In this document: piece after piece, positions 19,954 through 60,459 of the stretch
Position numbering within the stretch: position 1 is the first letter of the stretch
Layout of the letters: each line of letters begins with the position of its first letter
Source of the DNA: Lepidodermella squamata
Lineage: Eukaryota; Animalia; Gastrotricha
DNA length: 64,000 nt
Reading direction: 5' to 3'
NCBI GenBank assembly: GCA_047495785.1
Contig: JBLDXI010000042.1
Location: 4,216,001-4,280,000, forward strand
Made by a program: the position numbers and the translations under genes
Notes under the pieces: generated by a model
What the model was told of the DNA's origin: nothing
The model's input: the letters and a program-made list of their open reading frames with translations, nothing else
Database searches by the model: none

Positions 19954-20555
19954 ATTTTAAATTTCAGAATATCTTTTAGCGGAACCAAAGTCAAAATATG
20001 CAAATCATTTATTGAATAATTCTACGAATTTTAGGCGAAGCTTCAATTCTGAATTGAGCGCTCTGTCTTAATGTTGCGCTAAATTTACTGGTGATTTTTA
20101 ATGTTCCCAATCTTGGCCCGCAAGAAATATCCGAAAAGCGATGTCAGGCCACTAGAAAATTCCAAAGTTTGGTTCCGCTGACAGCAAATTTGGTTCAGCT
20201 AAAAGGAGGACCCTTAAATGAAAAAATCAAATTTGAAATGAAAAAATTTAAATTTTGAGTTACATAATCCCGAATTCCGGAAAAGCAATCGGAAATGTGT
20301 CTCATATTTTTTTAAATATTATTTTCTAATTACGTGTGAATTTTCCAAGGTCAAAAATCTATCAACTAAAAATGGGCTCAGCTTACGCAAGTCAGTTCCT
20401 TGTTTGTTTCGCAATTTTCCACTCGCAACACTCGCGCTGTGTGGCCTATTATTGCGCATTTGTCCCTAGAAACATTTCTATACTGCGAGATTGGTATAAA
20501 AACCCAATATTTTCCCTATTTCTCCATCATCACTCAGCAATCACTCAGTTCCACA

Positions 20556-35749: not shown

Positions 35750-36232
35750 ATGAGATTAAATCTCAGATTTACAACGTTACTCACTGCTGTTCTATTTTTG
35801 TTCGATCAATGTTTTGCCACCCGCAAACATTCTCAGCAACCGATTAACAGAAATCTCAGCCGACTCGTTCTGCAATTTATCCAGTCATCAAAAATCAGCC
35901 AACCTGGCGATGAGCAGCAGACCGAAAGGTCGAAAGAATTGATCGCTGTCGAGCTGGCAAGTTTACTTCAGGCTAGAATAGCGACACGCTGCTGGCAATC
36001 GAAAGCGCCAAATGCAGATTTCTGGTTCCAAGATGTGCTTCGAAGCATAGATAGATCTCTTTATTGTGAGATAGCGAATGATTCCCGAACCAGAAGCTCT
36101 CCGCTCACGTTTTCGTTGTGGCTAAAACTGCTCAGTGCAGCATCGCACAGACGACTTGTGACTTACGAAATAACGAAGATCATGGACGAGATAGCTGCGG
36201 AAGCTACATATAGATGGGAAAGAAGCTTATGA
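35750..36232 (+). CDS. Secreted cluster protein A (intronless subfamily), 160 aa
   Basis: Signal peptide; LLQARIATRC...LYC...SPLTFSLWLKLL; AATAAA overlapping the stop; paralog of C. Confidence 0.8.
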   Translation: MRLNLRFTTLLTAVLFLFDQCFATRKHSQQPINRNLSRLVLQFIQSSKISQPGDEQQTERSKELIAVELASLLQARIATRCWQSKAPNADFWFQDVLRSIDRSLYCEIANDSRTRSSPLTFSLWLKLLSAASHRRLVTYEITKIMDEIAAEATYRWERSL

Positions 36233-37503
36233 ATAAAATAAAAAGCTTTTCACGAAATTATCTTATTACTATTCAGTATATAGGAGCTATTCATTCAAAC
36301 AGCATTGCAATAGCGAAATGGCCCAAGACCATACGTAGACTTGAGGCTAGCGCCCCTATCTCAAGCCTTCAAAACCTGTTGCTATAAAGATTTCCGCAAG
36401 AATTTCCGCGTAATTCGTCTGCCATCTGTCATCCATCAGCGAGGTACATATGGATAATATTGCTTCATTGCCACATACCTGTATCCATCTGATGGTCACT
36501 CAATGGTCATGTTCACTCAATCGAATCGCGGAACAGCATCACGTGTTTGCTTCGCGCCTCTTAATTCCGTTTCAACGCGTCTGAAATCACGAATCCATCG
36601 ATTACTAATCTTCAGAATGTACTAGCTCTACAACAAGATATCATCCCTTTCCAATCATATAGGCTATTGGAAATTAGAAGCAACTCATCGCTGAACACTT
36701 TTAGGACATTTTGGACCGCAATCCACAATATTTGTAAATTTTGCCAAAATGTATCTTTCGGGTTAAGAAATCATCGTACCGCAATTACATATTCGATTTG
36801 AATTATTAGAGATTAGAGAATGAGTCATGTTTCATCGGGCAGTCTGAGTACGCCTCTGCTTAGCCGTGGGTTATTTTACATTTTAGGTACGAACGAACGA
36901 ATTTCTTTTATTCTGTCCCCATTTGACATGAAAATTTAATAAATTTAAACGCAGACAACAAAACGCACAGCAACAGCAAAAAACATATGTCAAACCAGCG
37001 CTTGTCTGAGAGAGCTCGCGGAAGACACTAGTGAGGACAGCTAGTGTCTTCCGTCAAGTCTTTTTTCGGATAAATCTTAGCAATCATCAAAGATTGCGCA
37101 CCCACTTAAATTTCATCACAGATTAAAAGCGGACGAGACGCTTTAGTTTCTAATTACTAAAATATCAATACAGCACTGTATCTTGGCTCGTGGCTTCTGT
37201 TATAGCGAATTTCCATCGAAACTTCATTTCTAGCAATCTGTTGAGTTTATTTTCACTGGGAACTGTTTGCCAACAAAGTCATCCTACGTGCACTAATCTG
37301 TAGTAAAGTTCTTCAGTTTTGTTTTGGGTCTCCTACCTACTCGTAGCCAGCCTACTCATATTATGAATAAAAGATAAAAATGCGTGTGATCGCGTTTCGC
37401 ACCGTAAACGACATACCTGGTAGAGTGAGATTGCTGATTCCTGAATTCACTCTTTTCACCTTTTACTCACTAGAAATTCGTTTTATCAACAATCGAGGCT
37501 GCG

Positions 37504-38044
37504 ATGCTTGTTTATGCTGCGACGCTATGCCTTTTTATTGGCGTGTATCAAACTTTTGCTGATGATGCAATACCCAGAAAAAGCTACATTTCTCCACGAA
37601 ACGAAGCCAGGATGGTCAAACTTGCGGCAACTCTGAGTAAATTTCAGCAGGGTAAGAGTCTTAATTGATTCTAAGAATGTAGCCCAATTTTTTTCCTTAG
37701 ATGAAAGCTCCCCGTTCGGCGATCCTAAGTTGCTAAAGCTTCTCGGGAAACTGGTCAAGTCGAGGCTTCGAAAGGTTCAGAAGAACACAAGGCAAGATTC
37801 GGCTAGTTTCAACTCATGGCTCAAGCAAAGGAAGCTGAATGGCCCCGCAGCTTATCAGGAGGCTGCTAATGCTATCCAGCTGATGCTGCTCGTTGACAAT
37901 CGGTTGAATGGCCGCTTGAAAATGAACCGCCCTCTGCATAGAACGGCGGTGAGACAAGTTCAAGGGCGGACAAGTGAAATGCTTCCGCCCTGCAAGAATT
38001 ATCGCATTGAAGCCGGATGCATTTATCGCAAAAGTTTAATTTGA
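37504..38044 (+). CDS. Secreted cluster protein B, 2 exons
   Basis: Exon 1 37504-37651 (MLVYAATLCLFIGVYQTFA...), phase-1 intron 37652-37700, exon 2 LVKSRL...SFNSWLKQRK...AYQEAANAI; paralog of E. Confidence 0.8.
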
Positions 38045-38949
38045 TGACTTTTATTGTCATAGCCAGTCAATTTATAGCTTGTCTTACTTACATGTAAAAG
38101 GTATGCATCTCAGTTACAATACAGCTTGCTCTGATGGAAATAAAATTCCTGTATTTTCAGCCACCATTCAAAGTAAATTCAATATTCATTTTCATTGCTT
38201 GTACCTTGTACCGCTTGTACCTTCGTGCCAAATCTAACTGCAATTTATTAACATCTAATCGATTGCTAATTTTCAAGTATTTGTTGCTTGGTGTCTGATA
38301 ACCAAATAACTCAGGCTGATGACGTCCGATCACGAGTCAGATATGTATCAAGTATTGTTTGCATCTGCCTAGATTTGTTCGCGAGAAAATAATCGATGCT
38401 CAACACTCAGTTACCACTGACTACGCCACTGCATCCTATAATTTGTGATATTTCGATCAAGTGGAAACGGCGAGGCGTCTAGTCCGTTGAATGACGAATT
38501 TAATGCACAAGGGCTGGGCGTGATATTCGAGCAGTTTATACTCCCACCACCGCAACCCGGAATCAGCAATCGCATTAATTGAACAGCCTTGAGATGCTAT
38601 AATTTGCTATTTGCAGTTAATAATTCATTTTGCTTTCATTTTGATCGAAACCTACCATATAGGCGTAATATAGAAATATATGCGTCTTATAGCGGCCATG
38701 AACACAAGCATGTGATTGATTTAAAAAAGATTGAAAGTAAGTCGAGTGTGTAGGTTTGTGTTGAGTTAATGTCCCGGGAACCACTAACATTTCACTGCTG
38801 GAAAGCAAGAAGAGGATCACTGATACCTGGGAGCGTCTTAATGAGTATATCTTTCGCATTTTCAGACCAAAATATACGAAGACATGCCTATCACATGTAT
38901 CCTTTTTATATTCCCTTTTGCTAGACAATTCCTTATACACACCTGATCA

Positions 38950-39411
38950 ATGGCAGCTTTTGCAATCACCATCTTCTTTTTGTATTTATCAGCGATAATC
39001 AGTCAAGCCAAATACATCGGAAAAGTCAATGATTCTGATGCCCAGCTGGAACATTTCATGCGGAAGTTGTCGACGCACTGCTTGCGATCAGTTTCTAACC
39101 ACAGCAAAAAGCCAGTTCGAAATGTGAAATATTCTTTGGCGATGGGAGTGGCCAGCATTGTCAAGCAAAGAATCAAGGTTGCATGTGAACATTGGAAGCA
39201 TTCAAGCATCCATTCAAGAGGAAACAGGTCGAAAAATATGTTGTATTGCTCAATCATGGCAAATGCGATGTTGGGCCAAAAGTCGCCGCCAACTTTCTAC
39301 CTGTGGTTCAAGATGCTGTCTCAATCTGCTGAACGTCAACTATTGATTCACGAAATTAGGAAGGCCATCGAAATTATGCTGTCAAAACATACTGGAGTAT
39401 CAGGGAAATAA
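38950..39411 (+). CDS. Secreted cluster protein C (intronless subfamily), 153 aa
   Basis: Signal peptide; IVKQRIKVAC...LYC...SPPTFYLWFKML. Confidence 0.8.
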   Translation: MAAFAITIFFLYLSAIISQAKYIGKVNDSDAQLEHFMRKLSTHCLRSVSNHSKKPVRNVKYSLAMGVASIVKQRIKVACEHWKHSSIHSRGNRSKNMLYCSIMANAMLGQKSPPTFYLWFKMLSQSAERQLLIHEIRKAIEIMLSKHTGVSGK

Positions 39412-39971
39412 ATTCAAAATCGAGTCAAATAGATTAAATTTCAATGTATTAGGGTTATGTATGCATGCCTATGTATATTTAACGTTTCAGTAACTTGAAA
39501 AATACAGAAATTTTATCTGCTGTTGCTTGCTTCATTAATGAAGCATCAATTTTCTTGGCATCCCGCTTCGGTCGAGCCAAGCAGAGTATTAAAGAATTTC
39601 AGATTCAGATCAATTGCGCATAGTAGCTTTAATATTCCTATGTCCCAACAATGGAAATTCTCTATTATAGGTTGCTTCGGCCCCGCAGGGGAATGAAGCG
39701 TATTGACCGCCCCCTGCCCCCACTCTCGCATTCATCATGATAAACACGTTTTTTCAGGGCGCGACAGCCACGTGCTTCAAATCAGCGGTCTCGATCCTGA
39801 CGATGCCATGCGCCAATTGTGATAATCAGCTCAGAGCGCGAATTATCCTACGATTCCCATGAGTACGATGTCCACTGTTTCGCTAACTACCTCGTATGAC
39901 GTACTAGCAATGTAAATTGAAATAAAATGACCGTATCTAATAGAAAACAATCCCATATGTAGCGTAGTAAC

Positions 39972-40336
39972 ATGAAATTTTCTTGCATTTTCTACCTTGT
40001 TCTGATACTAATTGAAGCAGTATCTTCAGCCACCTCATTTTACTTAGACCCCGAAAATCCGCTTTGGAGCGAAATTTACGAGAGAGAACTACAGTTAATA
40101 TCATCCAAGCTAAGGAGCCTTCTTCGCGATGGTAATCAGCGATAATTTTACGTATTAAGCATAATTATGTGACTTCAGATGCTGACTTGACATCGAAACT
40201 GATTTCTAGGGTGGTAAAAAAGCTGCTCAAACGGCGTTTAGAAGAACAGCAAGTCAAGCCGTCGATAAAACCCTTCGTCAAGCTGAAAGATTCGGTACCA
40301 TTCAAATCCTGGCGGCGGCGTTTATTTGCATCATAA
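39972..40336 (+). CDS. Secreted cluster protein D, 2 exons (absent from ORF track)
   Basis: Exon 1 39972-40131 (MKFSCIFYLVLILIEAVSS...ISSKLRSLL), phase-1 intron 40132-40178, exon 2 VVKKLLKRRL...PFKSWRRRLFAS*. Confidence 0.75.
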
Positions 40337-40758
40337 ATAATGAATCATTCGTTCAATTTCGAAGATTATAGGGTATTGCGTTGTGGTCCGGAAATAGCTA
40401 ACTCAATCAAGGCCTATTTGTGTCCTACAAATGTATCTTCATCTGAGCATAAAATCGAATAAATCTTCGAGTATTAACCCATTATTTTTATCACGGCCGA
40501 GTATATTTTGAGGTATAATAGAGCGAGAATTGTCTGCGTCAAAAGCATGTGGTGATGACGCGGGGCCTACTGGTGCGCGCAATGTCGCTAAACGAGTCAG
40601 GGTACTAACTACTGAGGGCGCTGAACGTGGGATAATTAGCAGGCTAACGAATCGCGAAAAGACCTTATTAGCAATTATCTTATAGCATCAAATCGATCAG
40701 AATTCTTTCTTATACTTCAAAAGAAGTTGAGAGTTCAAGCCTGTCGTGAATATTTTCC

Positions 40759-41338
40759 ATGGCTCGAATAGTTCTGCTCAGCTTGATCTTTTTTGCTCTT
40801 CACCTGGCCGTTCTGAGCATGGAAACTCAGGCAGATGTGGAAAAATTGCTAGATATGCCTGGGGTTAGTCCAAGGCGGATGAAGTCAATTGCTTCAAAGC
40901 TTCACAAAATCCTATCAGCAAAGAACCGTAAAAGCCCTGAAAGTTGACTATTCTTCGATTTTATAAATCTGTTTAACCTTAGGAACTGAGGCCGAACCAG
41001 TGAGTCAGGAAGTTGTTCGCTATCTCGCAGATCTTGTCAAGTTACGGATTGCTAACAAATGTCCTGATTCAATTCCTCAAGAGCTCTGCAACACAGATGG
41101 ACCTTCTTCGTTCTTCGCCTGGCTTAAACAAAGGCAGAGAGCTGCGTTGAGGCGAGAGGCTTACAAGGAAACAGCTGATGCTATCAATAAGCTGCTTCTC
41201 ATTGGCAAAAATCCGATGAAAATGAAGCCGAGGAGAAAGCAGACGGTTAAAGGTACTCAATCAGATGAAACGGCCCCTAAATTGGAGATTAAAGCTGACA
41301 AGGTTTCGAGTATCATGGCCGCTCAACGCTTGCCCTGA
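40759..41338 (+). CDS. Secreted cluster protein E, 2 exons
   Basis: Exon 1 40759-40927, phase-1 intron 40928-40982, exon 2 LVKLRIANKCPDSIPQELC...SFFAWLKQRQ. Confidence 0.85.
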
Positions 41339-42040
41339 GGGCTCAAATTTGTTATACAGCAAGGCCATATTCCGTCAAATGTAACATGTAGTCTTGTTGA
41401 TTTTGGTCTTGTATACACGAAAATGGAATTTCTCAGTAAAAACAGTCGAATTTTACCCCATTGACGTTAAATTCTGTAGTGAATCTATTAATATTACTCT
41501 CTTTAACATCTCTGATTAATGAAAAAGACTGGACATACATTACTCGGCATTCTTTGTAGCGATATAACATCCCCGTCTACTTTAGCCTACTCACTGATGA
41601 TGTTTACCGAGCTTAATCACGCGCCTAAGTGCAAAGCCTCATTGTCCGAAAATCAAGTGTAAACAGTCAATCGATCTGCGGTGATTTGCGTCATTCAAGA
41701 ACTGCTTTAGTTTCGCTTTAAACGCATGAAACTAACCTCAAAGCGAATACGCCATAAAGATCAAGTACCGTGGCCTAAGATTTGAACTGAAAGGCCAGTT
41801 GCGTCAATCTCGCAATTTCGAAAGTTCTAATTTGAGGATTGAATCAGCTTCAAAACGTCCGAAAGAGTGGCCTGCCTGTCATAAACAATTACCAAGGGCT
41901 CGATTTCGATGTTGTAATCACTGCTTTGAGTTCAATTTATGTCACACGCTAATGCATCGATGACTTTCATGAGCGACAGGGCGAGACGTATCGCCTTATA
42001 AAAGCCTGGTTGGAAGTGATCTCAAACGAATCTCTGGAAT

Positions 42041-42474
42041 ATGTTACTTTTAGCCGCCTTCACATTAACCTGGATCGCTTCCAGCATTGTTGTGAGCCAG
42101 CCAGTCAATAGGAAGCAAGATTCGCCCGCAGATAAATCAGCTCGCAAACCAACGATCGTAGAAGGTGAGATATTGTCTTTCACTTTGTGGATCTTCCATG
42201 CTAATTTGCGTCGTTTTTAGTAGAAACTCTACTGCAGAAAGTGGTGAGCTTGATGAAGACGCAACCAGAGCTTTTAGAAAAGCTTCCGTCCGAACTAAAG
42301 GATCGAGTAATGCGTAAGCTACGCATGCAGAAGTGTATCAGCTTGATTGGCTCGAAGCGAGTCTGTGAGAATAATGTTTCGTTCTTCTTATGGGCTCAAC
42401 TTTTCGCCAAGGATATCATGAAGGGCAAGTACGATGGCGCTATCATCGGAACTGATTCGTACTGGTCTCGATAG
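42041..42474 (+). CDS. Secreted cluster protein F, 2 exons
   Basis: Exon 1 42041-42164 (MLLLAAFTLTWIASSIVVS), phase-1 intron 42165-42220, exon 2 RKLRMQKCISLIGSKRVCENNVSFFLWAQLFAKDIMKGKYD; TATAAAA about 40 nt upstream. Confidence 0.88.
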
Positions 42475-44323
42475 TCAGCAGCTTGCTGAACTTGCTGTGA
42501 AGCTAATTTGATACTTCGTTCGCATAAAAGAATTCCACCTATAAATCAATTGCTGTGTTGCTACAAAAGGGCACGCTCTTTGAATTTCGAGATGAATACA
42601 CTGTTTGAATAAAGCAACCTCTCGGTGCCCCAAGCATCAGGTTAATTAGTTGAATGTGTGTCATTCAAGAAGGAATATCCAACGTGCCATCGAAACGGAG
42701 TAGACCAATGACGACTTGTTCACATCTGAGATTTATAGCACGAGAATGGGTAATGTAGACGAGGCGCAGTCGTGTCGCAATGGCCCAATCGAGTGCGGAG
42801 AATCCAAAGCGTTTCCCAAGATAGGCATACAGTTCCTGGTAGTTTTGATTATCTTTGATAGCCGCCATATTTTACAACCGTTGCAGAAATTTCGAAAAAA
42901 TTCTCTCAGCCACTAGAATCTATAGAAGATTCACCCCGATATTGTGACATCAATTAAGCAATTTTCACGCTCTATAAACGCGTGCCGCATCAATGGGCAA
43001 TTCTCGGAAAAGACTGACAAAGCCGTCACTCGAGGCGGTTAATTAAAAAACTTACTCCCCCTTCGACTCACTGTGCCAATGGGTTAGCGAAGAGTGGAGG
43101 GAGGACCTAAACGCGCCGCTAGTTCTTAAGTCGTTCACGGTCACCGGTAGCAGTGAGGCCAGCGTGATCTTCTGCATGAAACCCGGTCGCGCTTGCGAAA
43201 GGACGAGCAATAGATTATGCAAGCGACCAGACCGCTGTATTGCGGTGGATTCGAGGTGGTAGAAGACCATACGTTGCCCAGCCCTAAAGCATAGACCCTA
43301 ACCCAAAGCCGCCAGGGAAAAAGCCGTCGTATCTGCGATTTCCGACAAGGCCGTAGCTGCGCAAGTTTTCGGCAATAAAATCGACACTTTTTCAAGTAAA
43401 AGAATCCCGTAAGCGACGCGGCATAACTTTCCATGATGCCGTCAATTAGGAGCGGCAGGGATCTGTCGAAACCTGTCGACATTTTCAGCTTTCAGCTGAG
43501 ATGGCCACTTCCAGGGACCAGTGTACGACTTTCAGGGGGGACGGCCGCTATCCCTGGCTGGATGCCCTGGTTTTACATATGTTATTCGAGTGAACCATTT
43601 TCCAATCAGTTATCGTAGAAATACCCCCTGCAAAGCCCAATAAGGTCCCTTACACGAATGTAGAATAGGCTTAAAGCTGAAAAGCTGATATTTCCCGCCC
43701 CATAAGGCGGATACAAACTATAATAGAATGTTATCAAATTATACCTGAAATCAGGCGATTAACACAAAATAACCCAGGGTTGCGAAGGACCTTTGTGATC
43801 TGAAAGCAGGTGGAGCTGATCATCCTGAAAAACGATCATTTTTATCGATATTGTAGGCCAGAATTTGTCGCGTAGCCTTTCCAAGCCTATAAGTTCAAAG
43901 ATTCTATCTAAGGTCCTTTTGAAAAGAGGTGGCGTTTTGCCACTTGAACCCCGATTACGCCTGGAACATAGAGAACGGAGAACCATCCGTTCTCTATGGC
44001 CTGGAAGGACCAGTAAACGTCTTGGTAAGTTTTTCATATTAGTTGCTCTCGTGGCAATTCAGAGTCAAAAGGAGGTTCCCTCCATGTGGTCAACAAATCA
44101 AGATAGGTAGTCACATGGCGCATGGCATGTGGGCATTGCATTTTTCCGCAGTGTCCCGGGTGGATGGATGTTCAAATACTGTACTGTATACGTCGTAATT
44201 TTCGCTGTGACCTTATTTTCGTTATTGGCAATTCGCCATCTATAATCTAATTTTCGTTGCTTTTATTTTCGTTGGCTCAGTTTCCAACGAAATTTTGAAC
44301 CCAGCGAAAATTCAAGCCTAATG

Positions 44324-46055: not shown

Positions 46056-48347
46056 CTAACCCGATGCAATAAGATTTCCTTTACAATATTTCTTCAAATT
46101 CACGCGGTACAGATTTCGTTTTACGATATTGTTCTTTATATCAGCAGGTAAATTATCGTCAAAGTTAAATACGGTAGTCGGCAATCGATTCCAAGTGTTT
46201 ACAGTACGGTTCAAAAAATAGTTCTTATAAATAGGTTTGGTGGGATTTTTGCACTTCATATTCGGATTTAAAACAGAGAAGCGAAAACGATGACCTCGAT
46301 TGTTATTCAACAAAAATTTTATATTATTAGAGATAGATGTTTTAACAGACCCATTAATTATTTTGAAAAGGAAGCAAAGATCGTATATAAGGCGCCGTTC
46401 TTCGAGAGACACTAGCCGAAATTTTTTTAGACGCTCGGAATAGGACGGACGCGAAGGATCGTAGGGTGATAAATTAAGAGCACGGCGAGTAAAGTAAGAT
46501 TGCAATTTTTCTAATTTGTCAATTTCATTTTTAAACCAAGGTGACCAGATGCAAGTACAATACTCTAGCAACGGGCGAACATATGTACAGTAGGCACGTA
46601 CTAACGTCTCAGGAGACTGACCTTTCAGAGCACGTAGTATCAGGTTTGCACGTAGGTAGGCTTTAGAAACAATCGAATTAATATGGGCTTTGAATTCTAG
46701 CTTTTCATCAATAAGAAGACCCAGGTCTTTATAGTTGAGACATCTTTGAAGCAAGTTTCCCCCTAGGTAGTAGGAAGATTTTGGATTTTTGAAGCCAAGA
46801 TGAAGAACCGCACATTTGTCAATAGAGAGCTTTAGTTGCCAAGTTTCAAGCCAGACAAAGATGTTTTCAAGAGATAGAGATAGACGTTCAGAGAGAGATG
46901 AATCATTTTTACAAAAGACTATGTATAATTTGCAGTCGTCAGCGAACAGTTTAATGGAGACACCTTCAGGTAGGATATCGGTAAGGTCATTAATGTAGAG
47001 CAGAAATAACAGAGGGCCCAGAACGGAACCCTGAGGTACGCCACTGGTTACGCAAATTTCATCGCTTAGGGTTCCGTTGACATTGACACGTTGGGTACGA
47101 TTAGTAAGATAGGAAGATAGCCAGTTTAGAAGATTACCATCAACTCCAATAGCTTTAAGTTTTATTAAGAGTTTCCGATGGCAAACAATGTCGAAGGCCT
47201 TAGCAAGATCTAGGTAGACTATATCCGCAAATTTCATGCATTCAAAGGCAAAGGTCCAGTCAAGCACGCATTCAAGCATTTGAGTAGCGGGTGATTTAAG
47301 TGCAGCGAGTCTGTTAAAATTAGAGAGCAACCTATTATAGTTTGGCGATTTAAAGGCAGTTTTTCGAAGTTTACGCCAAACATTCAGCTTTTTCGAAGCA
47401 ATTTTTCTTATATTTTTTGGATATTTGAAGCGTTTTTTATAAGAGCTGCGTAGCGGAACAAATTCATTCACAAGATATATTAAGAATGAGTTGAATTTAG
47501 CGTACGAGCGTTCGATATCATCACCGCACTCAAGAAAAAAATCATTCCAGTTAACGTTATTTAAAGCTAAAGTAAGATTAGTATAATCAGCCTTATAAAA
47601 ATTGTGTGAGGCCGAATTATTATTAGATTTAGGGCAAGAGTCAGCGTCGAGGTCGAAAGTGATGGAGAAGTGATCACTAGTAGAGAAAGGAGCAGACACG
47701 TAGATATCATGAATATTTAAAAAGGAATTGGTAAGCACAACATCCAGAATATTATTCGAATTCTTTTTAGTCGGTTCAGAAATCAATTGTGTTAAAGAAT
47801 TTTCAGAAAAACAATTTATGAACAGGCTTTCCATTCTATGGTAACTGCGATTCAAATCATGCCATTGAATATTAGGAAGATTAAGGTCACCAACAAAATA
47901 AATTGGATGGGAGCATTGTGCGAGGAAAGAAAAGTTTGAACATAGTGACATACCATACTCATAATCAGCTGGAGAATAATAAGGTGGGCGATAAAAACCC
48001 ACAATTCTGTGCACACATTTTTTTGAAAAAACAACATCAATTGCAATTATTTCAGCCGGTTTGATTTCATTTGGAATTTCAACTTCAACATAATTAAGCG
48101 TGTTTTTGACAAAGATACAAACTCCTCCCCCTGTCGAGGAAGTTCTATTACAAGGAACCATAGTGTAGTTGTCATTTGTAAACATTCCTTTAGATACAGT
48201 TTCGTCAAACCAGGTTTCAACGACTATGATAATGTCATATACATCAGAATCTAATAATAAGAGAAATTCAAAGTTTTTGTTTTTCAGGCTCCGGGCATTG
48301 CAGTAGTACACTTTGTAGCGGCGGGTTGGCGAAGAGCCTGTGGTAAC
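46056..48347 (-). CDS. LINE ORF2 (APE endonuclease plus reverse transcriptase, N-terminal part of RT deleted in frame)
   Basis: NARSL, ETW, GGGV, YRPP, GDLN, SDH; LDLAKAFD, SGVPQGSVLGPLLF, FADD, DLG. The usual ALV.P..K...YRPISL...Q.GF segment is missing before SPATQML. Confidence 0.92.
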   Translation of the reverse strand, partial: VTTGSSPTRRYKVYYCNARSLKNKNFEFLLLLDSDVYDIIIVVETWFDETVSKGMFTNDNYTMVPCNRTSSTGGGVCIFVKNTLNYVEVEIPNEIKPAEIIAIDVVFSKKCVHRIVGFYRPPYYSPADYEYGMSLCSNFSFLAQCSHPIYFVGDLNLPNIQWHDLNRSYHRMESLFINCFSENSLTQLISEPTKKNSNNILDVVLTNSFLNIHDIYVSAPFSTSDHFSITFDLDADSCPKSNNNSASHNFYKADYTNLTLALNNVNWNDFFLECGDDIERSYAKFNSFLIYLVNEFVPLRSSYKKRFKYPKNIRKIASKKLNVWRKLRKTAFKSPNYNRLLSNFNRLAALKSPATQMLECVLDWTFAFECMKFADIVYLDLAKAFDIVCHRKLLIKLKAIGVDGNLLNWLSSYLTNRTQRVNVNGTLSDEICVTSGVPQGSVLGPLLFLLYINDLTDILPEGVSIKLFADDCKLYIVFCKNDSSLSERLSLSLENIFVWLETWQLKLSIDKCAVLHLGFKNPKSSYYLGGNLLQRCLNYKDLGLLIDEKLEFKAHINSIVSKAYLRANLILRALKGQSPETLVRAYCTYVRPLLEYCTCIWSPWFKNEIDKLEKLQSYFTRRALNLSPYDPSRPSYSERLKKFRLVSLEERRLIYDLCFLFKIINGSVKTSISNNIKFLLNNNRGHRFRFSVLNPNMKCKNPTKPIYKNYFLNRTVNTWNRLPTTVFNFDDNLPADIKNNIVKRNLYRVNLKKYCKGNLIASG

Positions 48348-49007
48348 CTAGTTGATCTTCTTAGCTTTCGTAGACAAGGGAGCCGCGATCGGGTCTTTTT
48401 CGAGCGTTTTAGTCAGGAAGTTGTATGTGAAGCTGGCATTTGCAGTAATAAGTTGAAAGCCATCCTTACCCCAAGAGATTTTTTGGTTATTCTTCGTGGC
48501 CTTGATTTCCTCGATTTTTTCACGAATAAGTTTGCTAGCAGTTGAGCGGTCCTTTGTACGGCAATTTTTGACGGAAAAATCCAGAGGGTTTCCATCTCCT
48601 TTCGGTTTGTGATTTTGGACACACTCCTTGATAATGTCCTCGGCGTTCAATGTTTTCAATTCAAAAATAACCGGTCGAGGTTTCGGCTTTTTGCCACCAG
48701 GTTTAGTTCCGAGGCGAAAGGCTTTGACCTCGATGTCGACGAGTTCAGGTATTTTTTCTTTGAGCTTGACTACAAGATCTTCGTCGTTGGTTTCAGGTAA
48801 ATTGTACACAATCGCAGAGGTGGCCAATCGGTCCTGTTTCAGCCGATTGATTTCGATTTGTAGGTCGTTAATCAGACAGCCCTGAGCTCGTATTTGTTGT
48901 TGTTGATCGGCAATGGTTGCCTTGAGACTGTCGATACTTTCGCGAACCCCCATGAACAAGCCTTCAAGGTAGGCCTTGTCGTTATCGTTGAAAGGCATTT
49001 TTGGCAC
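48348..49007 (-). CDS. LINE ORF1 (coiled coil plus RRM-like)
   Basis: Heptad region, IVYNLPE, FRLG...PRPVI typical of CR1/L1-like ORF1. Confidence 0.85.
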   Translation of the reverse strand: MPKMPFNDNDKAYLEGLFMGVRESIDSLKATIADQQQQIRAQGCLINDLQIEINRLKQDRLATSAIVYNLPETNDEDLVVKLKEKIPELVDIEVKAFRLGTKPGGKKPKPRPVIFELKTLNAEDIIKECVQNHKPKGDGNPLDFSVKNCRTKDRSTASKLIREKIEEIKATKNNQKISWGKDGFQLITANASFTYNFLTKTLEKDPIAAPLSTKAKKIN

Positions 49008-49145
49008 ACGGCCAGTATAGTAATATGTTATAATAATAAATTTGATAGTTGATAGAAAGTTGATAAAAAGCGGAAAAAAACAACTTTCTTTTAGAATGAA
49101 ATCGAGTGAATCATTCTAAGATTTATGATTTTAGCCTACTCTTCC

Positions 49146-49638
49146 ATGGCTTTTCTCCCATGCTGTCTTTTCCTTTGTACATTGGCTGTTGCAACCTTGA
49201 CCCAGCCGATCGAGATCATAACTGTACCAGAAATCCCGCTTGGAGCAGCCGATCAAGAGTCGGGAATAGCTATTGCAGTGCCGGCAGTCAATATAGAAGC
49301 TTCGGATTCTGTTATTGAGGCAAATTCGTATCAATCAAGCAGCCAATTGAACATAGCTGGTGAGATAATTTTCGAAATTCTAGATTGTTTAATTGATTAT
49401 TTGTTTCTTGATAGCTGAGAAAGCGCAAAAGCTCCAAAAAAGCGTTTCATTCATATTGCGACATATTTCGCGGCAACTTCGTGGGCAAATAGTGCGAAAT
49501 CTGCGCTTGAAGAAATGTATCGAGATCATCGGATCGCGTAATGTCTGCGAGAACAAGGCAACATTCTACCTATGGGCCCAGTTTCTTGCTAAAGACATTA
49601 TGGCTGGCAAGTTTGATGGAAAACTGTTCTCTGCCTGA
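49146..49638 (+). CDS. Secreted cluster protein G, 2 exons
   Basis: Exon 1 49146-49359 (signal plus acidic region), phase-1 intron 49360-49414, exon 2 RNLRLKKCIEIIGSRNVCENKATFYLWAQFLAKDIMAGKFD. Confidence 0.88.
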
Positions 49639-50785: not shown

Positions 50786-51204
50786 ATGTCAACCATCGTT
50801 GCTGTATATTTCGTGGTTGTATTCCTCGTGGGAATCGGCTACTCGCAAGAAAATATAGCCGAGCTTGATGTGCTGAAACCCAAAATCTCTAATATAAAAT
50901 TGGCAAAGATAGGCGGTAAGGTCTTTCAAAATTTCTGATAAATTTCTCATCACTCAATTTCTGCGTAGATGCCATGCTGAACCACGCCGATATGCTGCGC
51001 GACAGTCGGCTGGCTTTGGATAAGTTGCCGAAACCACTCCTTGTCAAGTTAATTCGGCGTTATCGCATGCAGAAGTGTTTATCGGTCATTCATTCGCAAG
51101 CGATTTGCAACCAGCGGGGATCTTTCAACATCTGGGCCCAACTACTTGCAAAAGATATCATGAATGGCAAGCGTGATGGCGCTATTCTAATAACAACCAA
51201 TTGA
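50786..51204 (+). CDS. Secreted cluster protein H, 2 exons
   Basis: Exon 1 50786-50915 (MSTIVAVYFVVVFLVGIGYS), phase-1 intron 50916-50968, exon 2 RRYRMQKCLSVIHSQAICNQRGSFNIWAQLLAKDIMNGKRD. Confidence 0.88.
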
Positions 51205-52142: not shown

Positions 52143-52565
52143 TCACCACCGTTTAATAGCGGTAATCAGCTGCAACATAACTTTGGAAGCTTGTAGATTG
52201 GCTTCTCGCTTCATTTCCATAGCTTTCAGCTCTCGCGTCCATAGGTAAAAGGCTAGCGGTCTAGTGGTGCAGAGTGCCTGCGGTATTGTTTCTGGGCACT
52301 TGTTTGAGAGCCGAATGTTAACCACCCTCGACACAAATTTCGCAAGAGCGACCTTCGCAGATGGAGAGAGTTCATCTGTTGGAAGCGCCTGATATTGGGC
52401 CATTTTCGAAGAGCGAAAGAAAATCTTACCTGCTTTCACTTTGGGAAGGCTGTTAACATTGGTTGAGGCAATTGTTGCGGGATCGCTTTCCAAAGAATGA
52501 GATTTCTCCGTTAAAAGAGCGATCACACTCGCCAGTATGACAATAAGCCAGAGCGAAATATCCAT
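52143..52565 (-). CDS. Secreted cluster protein I (inverted orientation), probable in-frame 54-nt intron
   Basis: Signal peptide; VVNIRLSNKCPETIPQALC...AFYLW; GTAAGA...CAACAG phase-1 intron at the family position has no stop. Confidence 0.85.
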   Translation of the reverse strand: MDISLWLIVILASVIALLTEKSHSLESDPATIASTNVNSLPKVKAGKIFFRSSKMAQYQALPTDELSPSAKVALAKFVSRVVNIRLSNKCPETIPQALCTTRPLAFYLWTRELKAMEMKREANLQASKVMLQLITAIKRW

Positions 52566-53858
52566 TTATCGAATTTTTTGAGACTTCGAGGGGTTTCACT
52601 TCAGAATATAAAGTGTTTGTATCCAGCGAGCCCGGAAATATGAGACGAAGGAATTTCGGTTTCTTGCAAATTCTCGCCTTGCTAATTCTCATCTTGCTAA
52701 TTTTTAAGTCTGACGAACAGTACCGAACATCTAAGAATACATCTAATTACACTTGATACGTCAGTAAAACGTGATTTTATGGCCATAGACGCTGGATTTA
52801 TTATTTAATATTCAATGTTTAATAACAAATTAACAGATTCTTGGCAAGATCTAACCGACTCAATTTTCATCCTGCAGTTTTGAACATCGACTAAAACATC
52901 TGTTTCATAATTTTTCACCGTCAGTTTCGTTATATTAATTCAATTCGGCCCATTTGAGCGAGAACTTCAATCGAGAAAATATGAACTTCAATTTATGGTT
53001 CTGTTATAAATAAAAATGCCGTATATACTGAATTACAAGGGAGTGCCTTTAAATTTTTTCTAAGCCCATTCCAAAAGGTATGACATTATTTGAAGAATTC
53101 CAGGTGAAGTCAGGTGAACGTCCGAATCGCTCATAAATATAGTGCAAAAATTCAAAATTGCAGCCAATTTTTTATTTTTCTGTGTAACTCATTTATTGCA
53201 TGTTTAACAATCATTTATAATTATCATCAATGATGCTTCTCGGGTGGTAGTTAAAACTGCTTTCATCGAAATTATGCGGAAGATTGAATGTTCTAAAATT
53301 TAGTACGAATGCGTTATTGACATGTCAAAAACACCGCCGTCCGAAATGGCTCGGAAAAGAGCATAAGCCACAAAAACATTTGGACATTACATTAAATATA
53401 CCTATAATTTGCATTGTAGGCGCTTCCATTTTGTTTGTCAAACGTTTTATGACCGATTTAATTCAACGGAGTCTGCTTATTGCAAGACTGTTCAAAGCGG
53501 GACATTGTTATGCATATAATGCCTATAGCCAGGAACAAAAAATTATCAAATTGATTAATTCCATTAAAAGCAGACATATAGCAGACTTTAGCAGAGTGAA
53601 AGCTGAATTGAATCCGCTAAGAGGTTATTTCCAAGTTAAACTGGGGAACAACACATCAAAGCGTGAAACTGTAACTAATTTTTACCCTATTTACTGTTCA
53701 TTCATAACATTTCGGCGTATCGCTTAGTATCGCACCCCGTCCAATTAAAATTATATGCGAGGATCCGAGCCCCACGCTCGCTTTCCCCTATATAAGGCAA
53801 GGGCTTCCGGTGAGCAGGCTTAACACGGTCTATATACTCACATCCGAATAAATTCAAC

Positions 53859-54307
53859 ATGCGACTTGTCGATTATTTTATTGCTATAACTTTATCCGTA
53901 GTTGGGAACGTTATAGCTGAGCAGTTGGAAGTAGTGGGAGTATTATCAGTTCAAGAGCCTGATGTTCCTGTGGAGAATCCTATGTCGTTGAAAACGCTGA
54001 TCGAGGTACCGCCTCGGTTGGATGGTGAGTACAACAGCTTTGAATGAGTTTCTAATATCTAACTCCAATTTTATCTTTTTCAGCTAATAGAAGAATCGGT
54101 CTACGGCAGAGTGCTCAAATAATTTGGCAAAAGATACCACATCAAACCCGGAATCAGATTATGCGGAAACTTCGAATGAAGAAATGCATAGAACTCATCA
54201 AATCGCAAGCAATATGCGACAATAGAGCATCATTCTATTTATGGGCTCAGTTCCTTGCGAAAGATATAATGGCTGGAAAACTCGATGACAAAATTCGCAT
54301 TATCTGA
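53859..54307 (+). CDS. Secreted cluster protein J, 2 exons
   Basis: Exon 1 53859-54024, phase-1 intron 54025-54083, exon 2 RKLRMKKCIELIKSQAICDNRASFYLWAQFLAKDIMAGKLD; TATATAA near 53790. Confidence 0.9.
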
Positions 54308-54655
54308 TTTTGAGCTCTTGATTATGCTTTCAAAATTGCAATTATTTCTACCAGTAATAGAGCTCGTTTTTATTGTTGGAATAAAACTTATCATCCGATT
54401 TAATTCACGCAGTTGTTTGTTGTTTCAGATGTTCAGCTTTCATTACTCAGTATAGAGAGGGGAAAAGCTTGTCTTATCATATTGAATTTTAATGCTGATC
54501 ACTCTCGAGTTGAAGCGAAATCGTAAAGTTAAACTGGGCAACTTCACATATTCCTTTTAGCTGAATGACCAGGGATTCTTTCCAATTCTAGTAGAGATTG
54601 AACGAGATAAAAGCTTATCATTTCAGTAGTAGGCAAAGCAACAATCTATACTTAT

Positions 54656-55852
54656 TCATCTTGTCATTAAATATAACAGGCAACCATCAGTAATAAGGAC
54701 GGTTAATGTGGAAGCCGTCGCCAATACAACATCCATTAGCCTCAGGACAGTCAAATGTCCAGCGATGCCCATCGGTTTCAGTGAAACCTTGCGACGCCAG
54801 AAGCGCATGCGACCTAGCTCAACAGCAGTCAAAGAGTAGCATGTAACAATGATACCGATTGCCATATTAAAAACGACCAGGTAAGCCAGCCAAACAGGTT
54901 CGGTTGTTTGCGGAATCGTGGAGTAAACGATACCCAACAGCATTGTAAAAGCTAGAACTGTTGCCATTCCGAAGGCTGGTCGATCCGACAAACCCGGCGG
55001 CATCAAAAACTGCCCGAGATGAAGAATCGTAACACAAAGAACCGGGTAAACTATGCTAATCATGACATATTGAGATTTACGCTTGAACTTTATGCCGAAT
55101 TCCATTTTGTAGTTGAAAAATATTGAGAATTTCGCCAGGTAAGCTTTAGTCCTCAGAGGAGGCACTACTTCCCAAACTTCAGTGGCGCCAATGAAATTCG
55201 AGGCGTTGTTGATCTCGAATAGTCCGATTCTATACACGGCCATTTCAGGTGGTTCCACGGCATAGAAAATAATGCTGCAATCGAGTGTATCAAATGGGAA
55301 GTTTTGAAAAGCGAACGAATCACAAGCCGTGTGAATTGTTGTGATGGCGATATAGAAAGCGGTCCGATTTGTGCTGAAGGGGTATACGTGGATGTTCCGT
55401 ATTACCTCTTCCAGGGGCGAAGCAAGCTCATAGCCATTCTCGTGCCTCAGTTCTGGATACCAAGTGTCTCTCTTGTCCATTTTTATTTCTAGTATTCGCA
55501 TACCTGGGGTGCTGCATTCTTTTTCGCTGAAGTAGTCCTGACATACAGTTGAGCATTTGTACTTCCAAAATGCGTTAATTTCGCCAAAAAGGGACAGCTT
55601 CTTGTCAACTTCATCTATCTGTACGAAACGGGCAAGAGTCCAAGAAATTTCGACTTGAATCGGTTCCTTGAATTTGGATTCTAGGGCCATGTGGCTTGGC
55701 AAGTCTAAATTTGTTACATAAGGGCAGCTGTCGAGATAAAATTGACGAAATGTTGCCCAGTCTCGAGTCTTGTTGAAGGGAGAAATTATTGCTGGAGAAA
55801 TTTCACATAACGCCATAGATGTTGTTAGAATCAATGTTGTCAACCGCATCAT
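54656..55852 (-). CDS. Divergent intronless Cys-loop ligand-gated ion channel subunit (398 aa)
   Basis: Signal peptide; WYPEL; Cys-loop CDSFAFQNFPFDTLDC; KRKSQY pre-M1; four TM segments; very short M3-M4 loop. Confidence 0.88.
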   Translation of the reverse strand: MMRLTTLILTTSMALCEISPAIISPFNKTRDWATFRQFYLDSCPYVTNLDLPSHMALESKFKEPIQVEISWTLARFVQIDEVDKKLSLFGEINAFWKYKCSTVCQDYFSEKECSTPGMRILEIKMDKRDTWYPELRHENGYELASPLEEVIRNIHVYPFSTNRTAFYIAITTIHTACDSFAFQNFPFDTLDCSIIFYAVEPPEMAVYRIGLFEINNASNFIGATEVWEVVPPLRTKAYLAKFSIFFNYKMEFGIKFKRKSQYVMISIVYPVLCVTILHLGQFLMPPGLSDRPAFGMATVLAFTMLLGIVYSTIPQTTEPVWLAYLVVFNMAIGIIVTCYSLTAVELGRMRFWRRKVSLKPMGIAGHLTVLRLMDVVLATASTLTVLITDGCLLYLMTR

Positions 55853-56995
55853 GTTTCGCTAAAACAAAATGGTTTTCCCTGAGTGAAATAGAAACAGCGA
55901 TGATTTCGGATTCCCCTTCAGCATTTGCAAATTTCCGCTTCTGTATCGTAAAAGTTAATATTCTCGTGTTGATTTTGTACGTGAGTCAAAATCGACGCGA
56001 ATAAGATAGGAAAATATTACTGAGAGTCGAATTTAAGCCATCTCATCCCACAGGACGATGGGCGAGAGTATGGCATCAATACAGCAGGCGATCTATAACC
56101 CGCGCATATTATTTTCCTTATCCTGCAGCTGGGTCATTTGTCCACAGAAGAATTGATGCTTGAAAGGAGAGCACACAGCAAGCTGGACGGTGTCACTGGT
56201 TGAAGTTGTAATGCCAATCGATTTTCGCCAAAGCGGGCCATAATCGATTTCGATTTCGAAACTTATTCTCAAGTTCAGGTCTATGTTGACCCACTCAACC
56301 AAAATGCATAGCTACGCCAACGGTTTCAGCTAAAATAAATATTGATAAGATATTTCCGCTTTCCTTTGGATTCCGCTTTCCCTCAATCGACTCGATTTGA
56401 TTCATGTTCCCCATTCATGTTGATTCATGTTTTGCGTTTTTAGGCCATAACTTTATGGAAATTGACCTGAAGACGGTGCGATTGATCTCTCATAATTAAG
56501 CGTAATTGACGTGGCCCTATCTGAATACAAAACTGGTTCGCATTTACTAGCTTATTCAATTAGTCAATAGTAGTAGGACATTCCATCCGATATATTTGCT
56601 TTTAGGACTAACCTAGTTCCGAGTTCTGAGGTTCGACATGTCAGACTAATTTGCTAGACTTTGACTTTGTCAGTGAAAATTATGCTGCTTAAAGGGACAT
56701 CTCTGTAAGCCATTAGGATTAAACAGTTAAGAACATGACTCATACTTCATCAAACACGTGAAAAGTCATGTAGCCACTACAATGTTTTGCCGTATAAACT
56801 TACCAGTGTAAATATGCTTTACCCGATTTAATGTTCAATTGAGTTGAACATGAACATTTCGTGGTACTTGTGATTGGCAAAGGGTTTAATTACAATTATT
56901 TTAGTTGAAGGAAATGTTAGGAAATAATTTAAATTTAGTAGAACTTTTCTCGAAAAAATGCGAGTGGGGGCTATAAATAAATAAATAACAAATGA

Positions 56996-57800
56996 TTAGA
57001 TTTTTCTGAGCAAAGCGGGTGTTAAGGTGGAGGTAACCCCTATTACGACGTCCATCAGCCTCAGGACAGTCAAATCTCGAGCGATACCCAACGGTTTCAA
57101 TGACCACTCACGACGCCAAAAAGGCGTGTGAGCCAGCTCAACAGCAGACAAAGAGTAGCATGTCACAATGATGCCAGCTGCCATATTGAAAACCAGCCAA
57201 ACAGGCTCTGTGGTTCGCGGTATTGACGAGAAAAGGATGTCTAACAGTATCGTAATGCTAGGACGGTAGTTATTCCAAAGGTTGGCCGATCAGGTAATTT
57301 TGGCGGCATTAAGAATTGCGCGAGATGAAGAATTGTAACGCAAAACGCAAAGAACCGGATAAACTGTGCTGGTCATAAACTAATGGGATTTGCGTTTGAA
57401 TTTTATGCCGAATTCCATTTTGTAGTTTGAAAATACCGAGAAATTTGCCAAGTGTTGTTTCTCAACGGAGGCACGAACTCCCAAATCTCGGTAGACCCAA
57501 TGAATATAGAATTATTATTTTTCGATTCGAAATACCACTTTGTTGGTAGCTTCCACGGGGTAGAAAATGATGTCGCAATTAAGGGTGTCGAACGGGAGTT
57601 TTTGGTAGGCGAATGAGTCGCAAGCCGTGGGAACTGTTGTGATTGCATTGTAATAAGCGGTCCGGATGCGGCTGGAGTGGATACACTGTGACGCTCCGAG
57701 TAGCCACTTCGAATGGCGCCGATTGTTCGTAGCCATTTTGATGCATCGTTATTAGTAGGAAAATATCCCGAAACTGTGTCCAATTAATAGTTTGGTTGAA
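56996..57800 (-). pseudogene. Frameshifted, internally deleted paralog of the 54656-55852 channel
   Basis: WTQFRDIFL, ACDSFAYQKLPFDTLNC, FIGSTEIWEFVPPLR and GIIVTCYSLSAVEL...LTVLRLMDVV lie in different frames. Confidence 0.85.
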
Positions 57801-59079
57801 TCTTAACTTCTCCACCGAAAAATCATCACACCAGACTTTGGGCGTGCACAAAATAACTGCAGCTATGCTTCTCATAATGTGTTGAATGACTCGTTCTCGA
57901 GTGTGATAATGTACTTGACGGCGTAGGTTTATTAATTCTACCAACTGTTATTTTGAAGCAGCTTCCATGGCGGAAATCGGATTAACGCCAAGTTAAAACT
58001 ACAGCTTAATTTTGATTTTGAAGTCGAAATGGACGCAGAGACCAAGTTATTCTAGCTTGCTAAGCTGGCGTCCCTCACTATGAACAGCTGGCCATGCGTA
58101 TGGATTCCAGTTTCCAGTTGACGCGTAGGGTCTAGAAAAGGATGCTTACGAGCGCCTTACGCCTTACGACGACTCTCAATTAAAATATTATTGCAATTCG
58201 AATTTATGGTTCCATAGGAAATAACGCTTTAAATTATAGATATATGATTTTAATTCCTCGCGAATGCCTGCGGAAGTCTTCCGGTATATGTTGTTGTCAG
58301 GCTCGTTTCCCTAAATTTCTGTTCTGTCCGACTTTTTAAAAAGAATTACAATAAATATTGGAAACCGCAGCCGATTCATCGTATTTTTCACTTTTTTAAT
58401 AATTCAATATTTCTTGTTAAACAAGAACAATCATTTTTAATTATATCATCAATTACTGGTCGAATGGTACCTAGTAAAGGCGGCTCTTATCGAAATTCGA
58501 TGCGTGACTGAAACCTTGCACAAACACGTGAAATTGAAATGTCAGAAAACTGTCCGAGATGGCCGGGAAAAGAGCATTAAGCTCAAAGATATCAGGGCAT
58601 TAAATTTGATACCTATAAACTAGCAGTAATTCGTGGCATTTTCTGACTATTTGACAAGTTTTCATGGCCGATTTTATTCCTCAGACGTATCGCTCAGTGC
58701 AAGAAAAATGCTCCAAAAATGCGAGACACTGTTATGCATGCATTCAACTAGGCAGGAACAAGAAATAAAAATGATTAATTCCATTAAAAGCCGACACCTT
58801 TTATTAGTAGCGAAGTGGAACATCAGCGAATCTGATACAAGGTTATTTTCGAGATGTACTCAGTAACCACACTTTAATGCATGAACCTATAACTAATTTT
58901 TATCCCAATATTTACCCCAAGTTCACTGGCTTTTCGCCGTATTGCTGTTTAGTTTTGAGCCGATCCAATTAAGGGAATAAAGACGAGGACCCACGACCCA
59001 CGCTTGTTTTCCCCTATAAAAGGCAAGGACCTCGGGTGAGCAGGCATATCATCGTCTAATATACAAGAATTCATTCAGC

Positions 59080-60358
59080 ATGTTAACTGAAAAGTTTTTC
59101 ATTGCAATAACTCTATCCTTAGCTGGTAACATTATTGCCGAGCAGCTCGAAGTGATGGACGTAATATCAGCTCGAGAGGCTGATATTGTGGGGACTCATT
59201 TGTCATTGAAAACCTTGAACGATGTTCCACATCTTGCAGAAGGTGAGTAATTAGAAAAAAGCCAATCTATTAGGGTGTATATTGTTTTGTCAGCTAATTC
59301 CTTGTTCCGTCAGCTAATTTCTGTTTTTGTCAGAAGTATCGTTTTCTGACAGCAATGACTCTTTTTGACAGCAGAACTACTATTTATCAGCTAATTTTAA
59401 ATAAAATTAAAATTATCTAAAATGTACTGCGAGCTACTGGGTAATATCGCGAAAAATACCAATTAGATGTCATTGACGTGATCGCCCTGCTTCGGCAATG
59501 TCCGGCCGCCAAGTCAGCCGATTTTTTCCTCAGTCCTACCGTAGTAATTACCGTAGTTTCATGTTTCATCTTTTGATATTAGTGCTCATTTTTCGCAAAA
59601 AAAGAAAGTAGCAAAAAGCGAAAATTTACCTTGATTGCCTGTAACTACTCGAACTACCTACTACCTATGTATGATATACTTTTGTGAAATCGAACCCGAA
59701 CTCACTGTCTACTACCCCCACACCTATCACTCTACAGAATAACAAAGAATTACCACGCTTCTATCGTCGCGTCAAACTCGAAACCCCCAGGATGGAAACT
59801 TGACAGTCTTGTTAACCGCCTTTTATTATACCGCGTATTGTGCGCGCGTAGTATTCGTTGAAACTGGCCGTGGATTCATTTCAACCCGAATATTGAAATT
59901 ATTGGGAAAATGTATAATTCGCATTTATATGATCTCGGCTAGCGATATAGGGTTTGAACGACAATTAGCACTAAACTAGCTGATAAATAGTAGTTCTGCT
60001 GTCAAAAAGAGTCATTGCTGTCAGAAAACGATACTTCTGACAAAAACAGGAATTAGCTGACAAAATGCAAAAATTAGCTGACGAAACTAGATTAACTCAT
60101 CTATTATCTCAACTGACTTCATCATATTTTTCAGCTAATAAAATTACCGGTCTTCGACAGAGTGCTCAAAGAATTTGGCAACAGTTAACGCATCAAACTC
60201 GCGGGCAGATAATGCGAATGGTGCGTATGAAGAAATGCATGAAGGTCATCGGCTCACAGGCAATATGTGACAACAGAGCATCATTTTATTTGTGGGCTCA
60301 ATTTTTAGCCAAAGATATCATGGCTGGCAAATTTGATGACGAAATTCGAATTGTCTGA
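59080..60358 (+). CDS. Secreted cluster protein K (recent paralog of J), 2 exons
   Basis: Exon 1 59080-59242; phase-1 intron 59243-60134 expanded by a MITE; exon 2 RMVRMKKCMKVIGSQAICDNRASFYLWAQFLAKDIMAGKFD; TATAAAA near 59015. Confidence 0.88.
59273..60098. mobile_element. Intronic TIR element (MITE), 826 bp
   Basis: About 110-bp inverted repeats (about 59286-59392 and 59978-60087); 8-bp direct repeat ATCTATTA at 59265-59272 and 60099-60106; related sequence at about 13300-13380. Confidence 0.85.
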
Positions 60359-60459
60359 TTATAATAAGCTTAATGCCTGTTTTATGTAACTGCAATGCTG
60401 TACGAATTAGACTATATTTCGCTCGAATAAAATTCGCTATATAATTTTAATGATTCATC

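Follow-up and report, generated by a model that had tools for sequence, protein, structure and literature searches.

The window analysed here is a stretch of 64,000 nucleotides (nt) of the gastrotrich Lepidodermella squamata (contig JBLDXI010000042.1), which has a guanine-plus-cytosine (G+C) content of ~41% and is eukaryotic and animal-like. Between positions 35750 and 60358 it contains a cluster of 11 genes, A to K, for small basic proteins that had been proposed in a first-pass annotation made from the DNA letters alone. Listing of open reading frames (ORFs) together with enumeration of splice sites recovered all 11 genes at the positions given there, 10 on the + strand and one on the − strand, with precursors of 105–174 amino acids (aa). 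Very probably these are old paralogous genes arranged in a tandem array, each encoding a signal peptide, a variable linker and a basic, all-helical domain.

Nine of the genes (B and D to K) need a single GT-AG intron, which joins an exon with the signal peptide and the variable linker (exon 1) to an exon with the conserved basic domain (exon 2). In all nine, the sole model that combines a strong donor (GTAAG, GTGAG or GTAAT) with a pyrimidine-rich acceptor places the intron in phase 1. Genes A (35750-36232, +; 160 aa, net charge +5) and C (38950-39411, +; 153 aa) have no intron and form a subfamily of their own, being 29% identical over their full length. Between and after them lie B (37504-37651 / 37701-38044, +; 49-nt intron, 163 aa), which lacks the Cys pair described below and carries a net charge of +18; D (39972-40131 / 40179-40336, +; 47-nt intron, 105 aa), the shortest and most divergent member, which has no Cys and keeps the F-x-x-W motif; and E (40759-40927 / 40983-41338, +; 55-nt intron, 174 aa), with a C-x8-C pair. 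Gene F (42041-42164 / 42221-42474, +; 56-nt intron, 125 aa) has the C-x9-C core motif and a second possible acceptor that would lengthen its intron to 59 nt. It is followed by G (49125-49359 / 49415-49638, +; 55-nt intron, 152 aa) and H (50786-50915 / 50969-51204, +; 53-nt intron, 121 aa), by the inverted gene I (52565-52430 / 52375-52143, −; 54-nt intron, 122 aa when spliced, C-x8-C), and by J (53859-54024 / 54084-54307, +; 59-nt intron, 129 aa). The intron of I is in frame, so that its ORF also runs through the intron and would give 140 aa if this were retained. The last gene, K (59080-59242 / 60135-60358, +; 128 aa), has an intact coding sequence and an intron of 892 nt, the one exception among nine introns of which eight measure 47–59 nt. 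Short introns of this type are normal in this genome, since a neighbouring cytochrome P450 gene also has a 56-nt intron of the form GTAAG...TAG.

The K intron contains a non-autonomous DNA transposon of ~810 nt with terminal inverted repeats, similar to a miniature inverted-repeat transposable element, at 59279-60092 (no strand assigned). Its inverted arms at 59309-59397 and 59973-60061 are 98% complementary, the full arms measure ~115 nt, and part of a further copy, from its terminus, is found 46 kb upstream at 13297-13378. Subtracting the element (~804–814 nt) leaves ~78–88 nt, a figure obtained by arithmetic without excision; the flanks of the K intron were aligned separately to the J intron with the element left in place. 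The first-pass annotation had assigned phase-1 introns of 47–59 nt to all nine genes once the element in K was discounted. The phase stands for all nine and the length for eight, and it is the remainder in K that does not fit. The transposon also carries subterminal GTCAGCTAATT-like repeats, a motif that resembles, possibly by chance, the acceptor of J and K together with the first bases of their exon 2 (CAG/CTAAT).

Each of the 11 proteins has a hydrophobic core at its N-terminus (Kyte-Doolittle values of 2.2–3.3 over 10 residues) and a positive net charge (+3 to +18), which agrees with their initial description as small, basic and provided with a signal-like N-terminus. Taken by itself, exon 2 has a charge of +6 to +16. 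The exon-1 linker is acidic in G (−7, followed by an exon 2 of +10), J and K, and near neutral in the remaining spliced genes. An F-x-x-W motif is invariant in all 11. The subfamily motifs and Cys pairs that had been read from the sequence were likewise confirmed in the alignments: F, G, H, J and K (hereafter the F-type subfamily) share C-x9-C and 19 invariant columns in exon 2, E and I have C-x8-C, A and C a wider pair, and B and D none; the mature proteins contain between zero and three Cys each. The order of elements is common to the subfamilies (a helix with an Arg, a Cys, a second Cys, F-x-x-W, a helix), and the linkers and C-terminal tails vary among the paralogues.

Whether the three subfamilies form one family was addressed with pairwise and profile comparisons. 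Within the subfamily of E, I, B and D, similarity is detectable at the sequence level (BLASTP expectation value, E, of 3e-14 for E against I and 2e-6 for B against E). The membership of D relies mainly on its architecture and position, given its weak similarity to B alone (BLASTP E=0.009). Between subfamilies, hhalign joined the F-type and E/I/B/D profiles with P=1.3e-3 and the E/I/B/D and A/C profiles with P=8.7e-5 over 66 columns. In a run of the profiles over the six-frame translation of the window (2774 pieces), the eight top non-self matches of the E/I/B/D profile included every gene of the F-type and A/C subfamilies, seven in all, and the best non-self match of both the F-type and the A/C profile was also a family member; no additional member was found elsewhere in the window by these searches. 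Comparison with composition-matched shuffles gave a similar picture. With the E/I/B/D profile, F, G, H, J, K, A and C ranked above at least 994 of 1000 shuffles, A and C above at least 998, and for A none of the 1000 reached its score; with the A/C profile, E and I outscored all 1000. The F-type profile placed I above all 1000 shuffles and did not separate A, B and D from them. Gene I was the best non-member match of both F-type profiles, with and without relatives from outside the window, and the best additional match in the window (E 0.021) of a 23-sequence family profile that includes those relatives (A8), for which F scores E=3.5e-26. Conversely, the best match of the E/I/B/D profile among the loci of the relatives was P0047 (E 0.013).

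These results make it probable that the three subfamilies are one family, connected as a chain that runs from the F-type proteins through E and I (with B and D) to A and C. They do not amount to proof of the single family that was first proposed: the links of the chain, by hhalign, shuffles and six-frame ranking, are significant though weak, and the direct comparison between its ends is weak (hhalign P=0.011–0.013 over 12–13 columns for F-type against A/C). The contrary reading has a small probability in our judgement: A and C, possibly also D, would be small secreted proteins of separate origin that share the cluster with the others and have F-x-x-W by chance. It is favoured by that weak direct comparison, by the failure of the F-type profile to pick out A, B and D, by the marginal match of D to B and by the lack of an intron in A and C. 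It is difficult to reconcile, however, with the 66-column alignment between E/I/B/D and A/C, with the reciprocal success of these two profiles against shuffled sequences, with the identical order of elements and with the interleaving of the genes on the DNA (A, B, C, D, E).

To look for relatives outside the window, an 11-sequence profile was compared exhaustively by HMMER with 1.84 billion representatives. Sixteen of the 18 matches at E <=1e-3 are genuine relatives of 51–155 aa, all of F type; P0042 and P0044, internally repetitive proteins without the motif, were rejected. The 16 relatives and the cluster proteins F, G, H, J and K share the C-terminal signature R-x3-C-x5-S-x3-C-x5-F-x2-W-A-x3-A ... 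G, of which E and I carry the C-x8-C variant and A, B, C and D match a part. R, C, S, C, F, W and the first A are invariant in the 23 aligned sequences, and the second A and the G are nearly so. All 16 relatives have C-x9-C, 15 are net basic, most have a signal-like start, and in 12 the domain reaches, after the conserved Gly, to within 0–6 residues of the stop codon. None has a name or a record in NCBI or UniRef; their only sources are ENA metagenome assemblies, which for six of them could be narrowed to four analyses, and Logan assemblies from four runs. On the longer contigs they are single ORFs with ordinary animal genes as neighbours (e.g., tRNA synthetase, FtsJ, Fringe, peptidase M14 and ankyrin), and several are tandem copies (L004 has two, L005 three and L008 two). 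The closest relative, P0033 (L009), is 65% identical to F in amino-acid sequence over 51 residues, and its locus looks genomic, being intronless and preceded by an upstream region of its own. As far as can be judged from sequence, the family is thus also present, partly in tandem, in assemblies of other animals. No relatives of the E/I/B/D or A/C subfamilies were among the HMMER matches outside the window. Word-based protein searches with exon 2 of G and the read-through ORF of I gave no matches, the length filter applied to G being one that would hide full proteins of its size; A, C and the channel gene beside the cluster genes had no identical sequence on record, two JGI metagenome scans no relatives, and a full-text search with short motif strings nothing relevant.

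Comparison with described families was negative. Library searches, run exon by exon for the two-exon genes, gave a best Pfam-A match of E 0.0078 for the 11 window proteins or exons, with all scores under the gathering threshold, and no Pfam family was matched by more than two of the 23 aligned members. Profile searches of the PDB returned only noise and de novo designed helical bundles, which match the helix-turn-helix in the N-terminal part of the domain. AlphaFold2, given exon 2 of J with a 23-row alignment, predicts a compact helical domain with helices at residues 2-16, 19-38, 41-44 and 50-62 (predicted local distance difference test, pLDDT, 84.4; predicted template modelling score, pTM, 0.57). 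Foldseek, the follow-up proposed together with this modelling, found no match to it in the PDB. Judged by Pfam, PDB sequences, Foldseek and the unnamed relatives, the family is undescribed, as had been suspected, with no link found to a described family or to a solved fold.

Two known groups deserve comparison on account of their general appearance. The twin Cx9C (CHCH) proteins of the mitochondrial intermembrane space are also small and helical, with two Cys nine residues apart in a helix-turn-helix. In contrast to these, the cluster proteins have one C-x9-C instead of two (C-x8-C in E and I, no pair in B and D), all 11 have a signal-like N-terminus and are predicted to be secreted and not mitochondrial, and none matches CHCH in Pfam. 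The saposin-like proteins (NK-lysin, caenopores and amoebapores) are small, secreted, helical and disulfide-bonded, and in invertebrates often basic and multigene. Saposins, however, have six Cys in a fixed pattern, three disulfides and five helices, whereas the mature cluster proteins have at most three Cys; there was no match to SapB in Pfam, nor to any PDB chain by Foldseek.

The divergence among the paralogues indicates both age and constraint. Nearly every pair has reached saturation at synonymous sites, from which it follows that the duplications are old. In the youngest pair, J and K, the synonymous distance (dS) is ~1.1, and the ratio of nonsynonymous to synonymous divergence (dN/dS) is 0.12 in exon 2 and 0.45 in exon 1, which shows that the domain is genuinely constrained as coding sequence and the linker less so; in the core, the proportion of nonsynonymous sites that differ (pN) is 0.10 against a synonymous proportion (pS) of 0.78. 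That pN is well below pS, that among the six-frame pieces of the window the profiles match only ORFs of the cluster, and that relatives occur elsewhere argue together that the gene pattern is not a product of chance. The description of the family as rapidly diversifying is not supported in view of the saturated dS, the low J–K ratio and the seven residues invariant across species. The dN/dS estimate that was to bear on it came out as purifying selection on the domain, measurable in this one pair. The label of effector is not supported either, as nothing indicates a parasite or an injected protein.

The origin of the J–K pair can still be seen in the DNA. The block with J and its upstream region (53206-54309) is duplicated as the K block (58426-60360). 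Between J and K lies an intact gene for a divergent Cys-loop channel of 398 aa (54656-55852, −), and next to it a decayed channel copy (~56996-57944, −) with ~72% DNA identity to the intact gene and broken into several short ORFs. The duplication thus took in the family gene and the channel gene together. Besides this channel gene, divergent Cys-loop channel ORFs occur at 5545-6696 and 23265-24917. A k-mer search of the regions upstream of the 11 genes yielded no convincing common promoter motif, and scans with Rfam and for tRNAs no matches.

A non-LTR (long terminal repeat) retroelement lies between F and G (46056-49007, −) and divides the cluster into A to F and G to K, as a neighbour and not as a member of the family. 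It consists of ORFs of 219 aa (48348-49007) and 751 aa (46056-48311), the latter matching Exo_endo_phos, Exo_endo_phos_2 and RVT_1 in Pfam, with the reverse transcriptase match covering part of the model. Upstream of the cluster is the CYP3-like P450 gene (27096-28801, −), whose intron (27736-27681) falls exactly at the split of its metagenome relatives. Its best named relatives are from molluscs, a nemertean, an annelid and a brachiopod (33–38% identity), nematode proteins being ~30% identical, and its closest relatives overall (47% and 44% identity) come from ENA assemblies that also yielded relatives of the cluster family. Such values point to an invertebrate that lacks a close annotated genome, possibly a spiralian, with nothing to suggest a human, pathogen or parasite source. 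The same animal lineage as that of the window was probably present in those ENA samples. The window also holds a sodium:solute symporter exon (Pfam).

Other features of the window lie outside the cluster. A remnant of a Mutator-type transposase (Mutator-like element, MULE) is found at 17891-19719 (−), and the block 18001-20000, which holds this remnant, is the sole G+C-rich block of the window (52% vs ~41%). The ORFs at 7861-8697 (−) and 9064-9492 (−) have sub-threshold Pfam matches to AAA_28 (E 2e-5) and to a T-antigen-type origin-binding domain (E 0.003; score 18.6 bits, cut-off 25); on this weak signal, the pair may be the remnant of a Rep/helicase-type mobile or virus-like element. Tandem paralogous ORFs of ~450 aa with matches to PQQ-like beta-propellers lie at 10134-11501 (+) and 13567-14904 (+), a pair unusual in an animal genome that could reflect horizontal acquisition or a lineage-specific family. 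Adjoining one of the channel genes there is a tandem repeat (6826-7003) with a period of 42–48 nt and ~3–4 copies.

The explanation that best covers these observations as a whole, and which comes near to being probable, is an old tandem family of folded secreted mini-proteins that bind an extracellular partner. The mode of action that we propose on this basis is a working one, and is put forward somewhat more tentatively; secretion, a disulfide and binding outside the cell are all inferred in it. In this model, the signal peptide would direct the protein to the secretory pathway, where the Cys pair would be oxidised and staple a helix-loop-helix. The core of the domain itself very probably consists of a long helix with the invariant Arg, a short loop closed by the Cys pair (C-x9-C or C-x8-C), and a helix with F-x-x-W-A, and the conserved C, C, S, F, W, A, A and G would be packed inside it. 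The product would be a mini-protein of three to four helices acting extracellularly in a ligand-, cytokine- or carrier-like manner, and the varying surfaces, linkers and C-terminal tails may give the paralogues different specificities. As expected for a packed core, and not for a linear lytic peptide, most of the invariant residues are hydrophobic or small. It is this combination of conserved residues mainly of the core type with variable surface, linker and tail that leads us to favour a folded, partner-binding protein.

The nearest analogues in such a model are the short-chain helical cytokines and helical peptide hormones, which are likewise small secreted helical bundles with few disulfides and tandem paralogues, and which have a phase-1 intron after the signal exon. 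The helical cytokines differ in showing no sequence or fold similarity to the cluster proteins, and none was among the Foldseek matches. Several points weigh against the proposal. The best Foldseek hit in the PDB had E 3.5 and a template modelling (TM) score <=0.37, which leaves the analogy with ligands without structural support; the AlphaFold2 model of A, for which the alignment consisted of A and C only, is poor (pLDDT 57.8), and the tie of A and C to the F-type proteins is indirect only. Secretion was called with a hydrophobicity heuristic. Furthermore, three features fit an antimicrobial or a processed peptide equally well: the strong cationic charge, the acidic linker that precedes the basic domain of G, J and K, and the second basic residue at P2 or P4 of the invariant Arg in 15 of the 21 F-type sequences.

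The strongest of the rival explanations, unlikely in our view and still to be taken seriously, is cationic host defence. The basic amphipathic helical domain, either intact or freed from an acidic propiece, would bind to microbial membranes and perturb them, and the array would constitute a repertoire. The positive charge of all 11 proteins and of nearly all relatives, the acidic linker ahead of a basic exon 2 in three genes, the multigene tandem arrays in more than one species and the absence of a match to a housekeeping family in Pfam speak for such a role. The likeness extends to the precursors of cationic helical antimicrobial peptides (cecropin-like, with signal, acidic propiece and cationic peptide), which share with the cluster the signal peptide, the cationic helical product, the tandem arrays and the acidic linker of G, J and K. 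Like these precursors, the cluster proteins are predicted to have a signal peptide followed by a cationic amphipathic helical mature part; this amounts to compatibility only, since these precursors are a functional class and not a family defined by homology. In contrast to them, the cluster proteins have a domain of 70–110 residues with a conserved hydrophobic core, one putative disulfide and no Pfam match. Seven residues invariant across species and a predicted packed fold set them apart from most antimicrobial peptides of the linear helical kind, purifying selection acts on the core in paralogues that are old, only three of the nine spliced genes have an acidic propiece, and neither Pfam nor Foldseek detected similarity to saposin-like or cecropin families.

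A precursor of the prohormone or neuropeptide type is an improbable alternative. A convertase would cut after the invariant Arg and release a C-terminal peptide of ~43 residues, made of one disulfide loop and an amphipathic helix, that would act on a receptor. The Arg four residues ahead of the first Cys is indeed invariant in all 23 aligned sequences, is preceded by a further Arg as R-x-x-R in all five F-type cluster proteins and as R-R or K-R-R in most of the metagenome relatives, and the conserved part lies at the extreme C-terminus, with 12 of the 16 relatives ending 0–6 residues past the conserved Gly. However, in six of the 21 sequences neither P2 nor P4 holds a basic residue, the confident model places the Arg halfway along a helix packed against the C-terminal one, and the stretch N-terminal of the Arg is likewise conserved among the relatives. 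Nor is there a conserved amidation signal, as the residue after the Gly varies (K, E, N, S, D or A).

It is also rather doubtful, and carries only a slight probability, that the proteins are components of a secreted material (e.g., mucus, adhesive, egg coat or seminal fluid) with a structural or reproductive role and no specific partner. Small, basic, secreted-type proteins encoded in many tandem copies, with variable linkers and tails, would suit such a function, but their composition is neither of low complexity nor repetitive, the domain is compact and conserved, and selection in the one measurable pair (J–K) is purifying and not diversifying. Finally, it is highly improbable that the cluster proteins are secreted to act on the divergent orphan Cys-loop (pentameric) receptors encoded around them, as protein ligands or as modulators. 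The copying of J and K, each with such a receptor gene, would accord with a co-evolving ligand-channel pair, which, if true, would be of a kind not described before.

The folded partner-binding mini-protein is the reading that we prefer for this cluster. If its genes are expressed, they would represent a family of secreted mini-proteins that is conserved in a few or more invertebrate lineages without annotated genomes. It is from families of this sort that new hormones, cytokine-like factors and defence proteins usually come, and the sequence signature, the profile and the confident domain model now allow this one to be traced.

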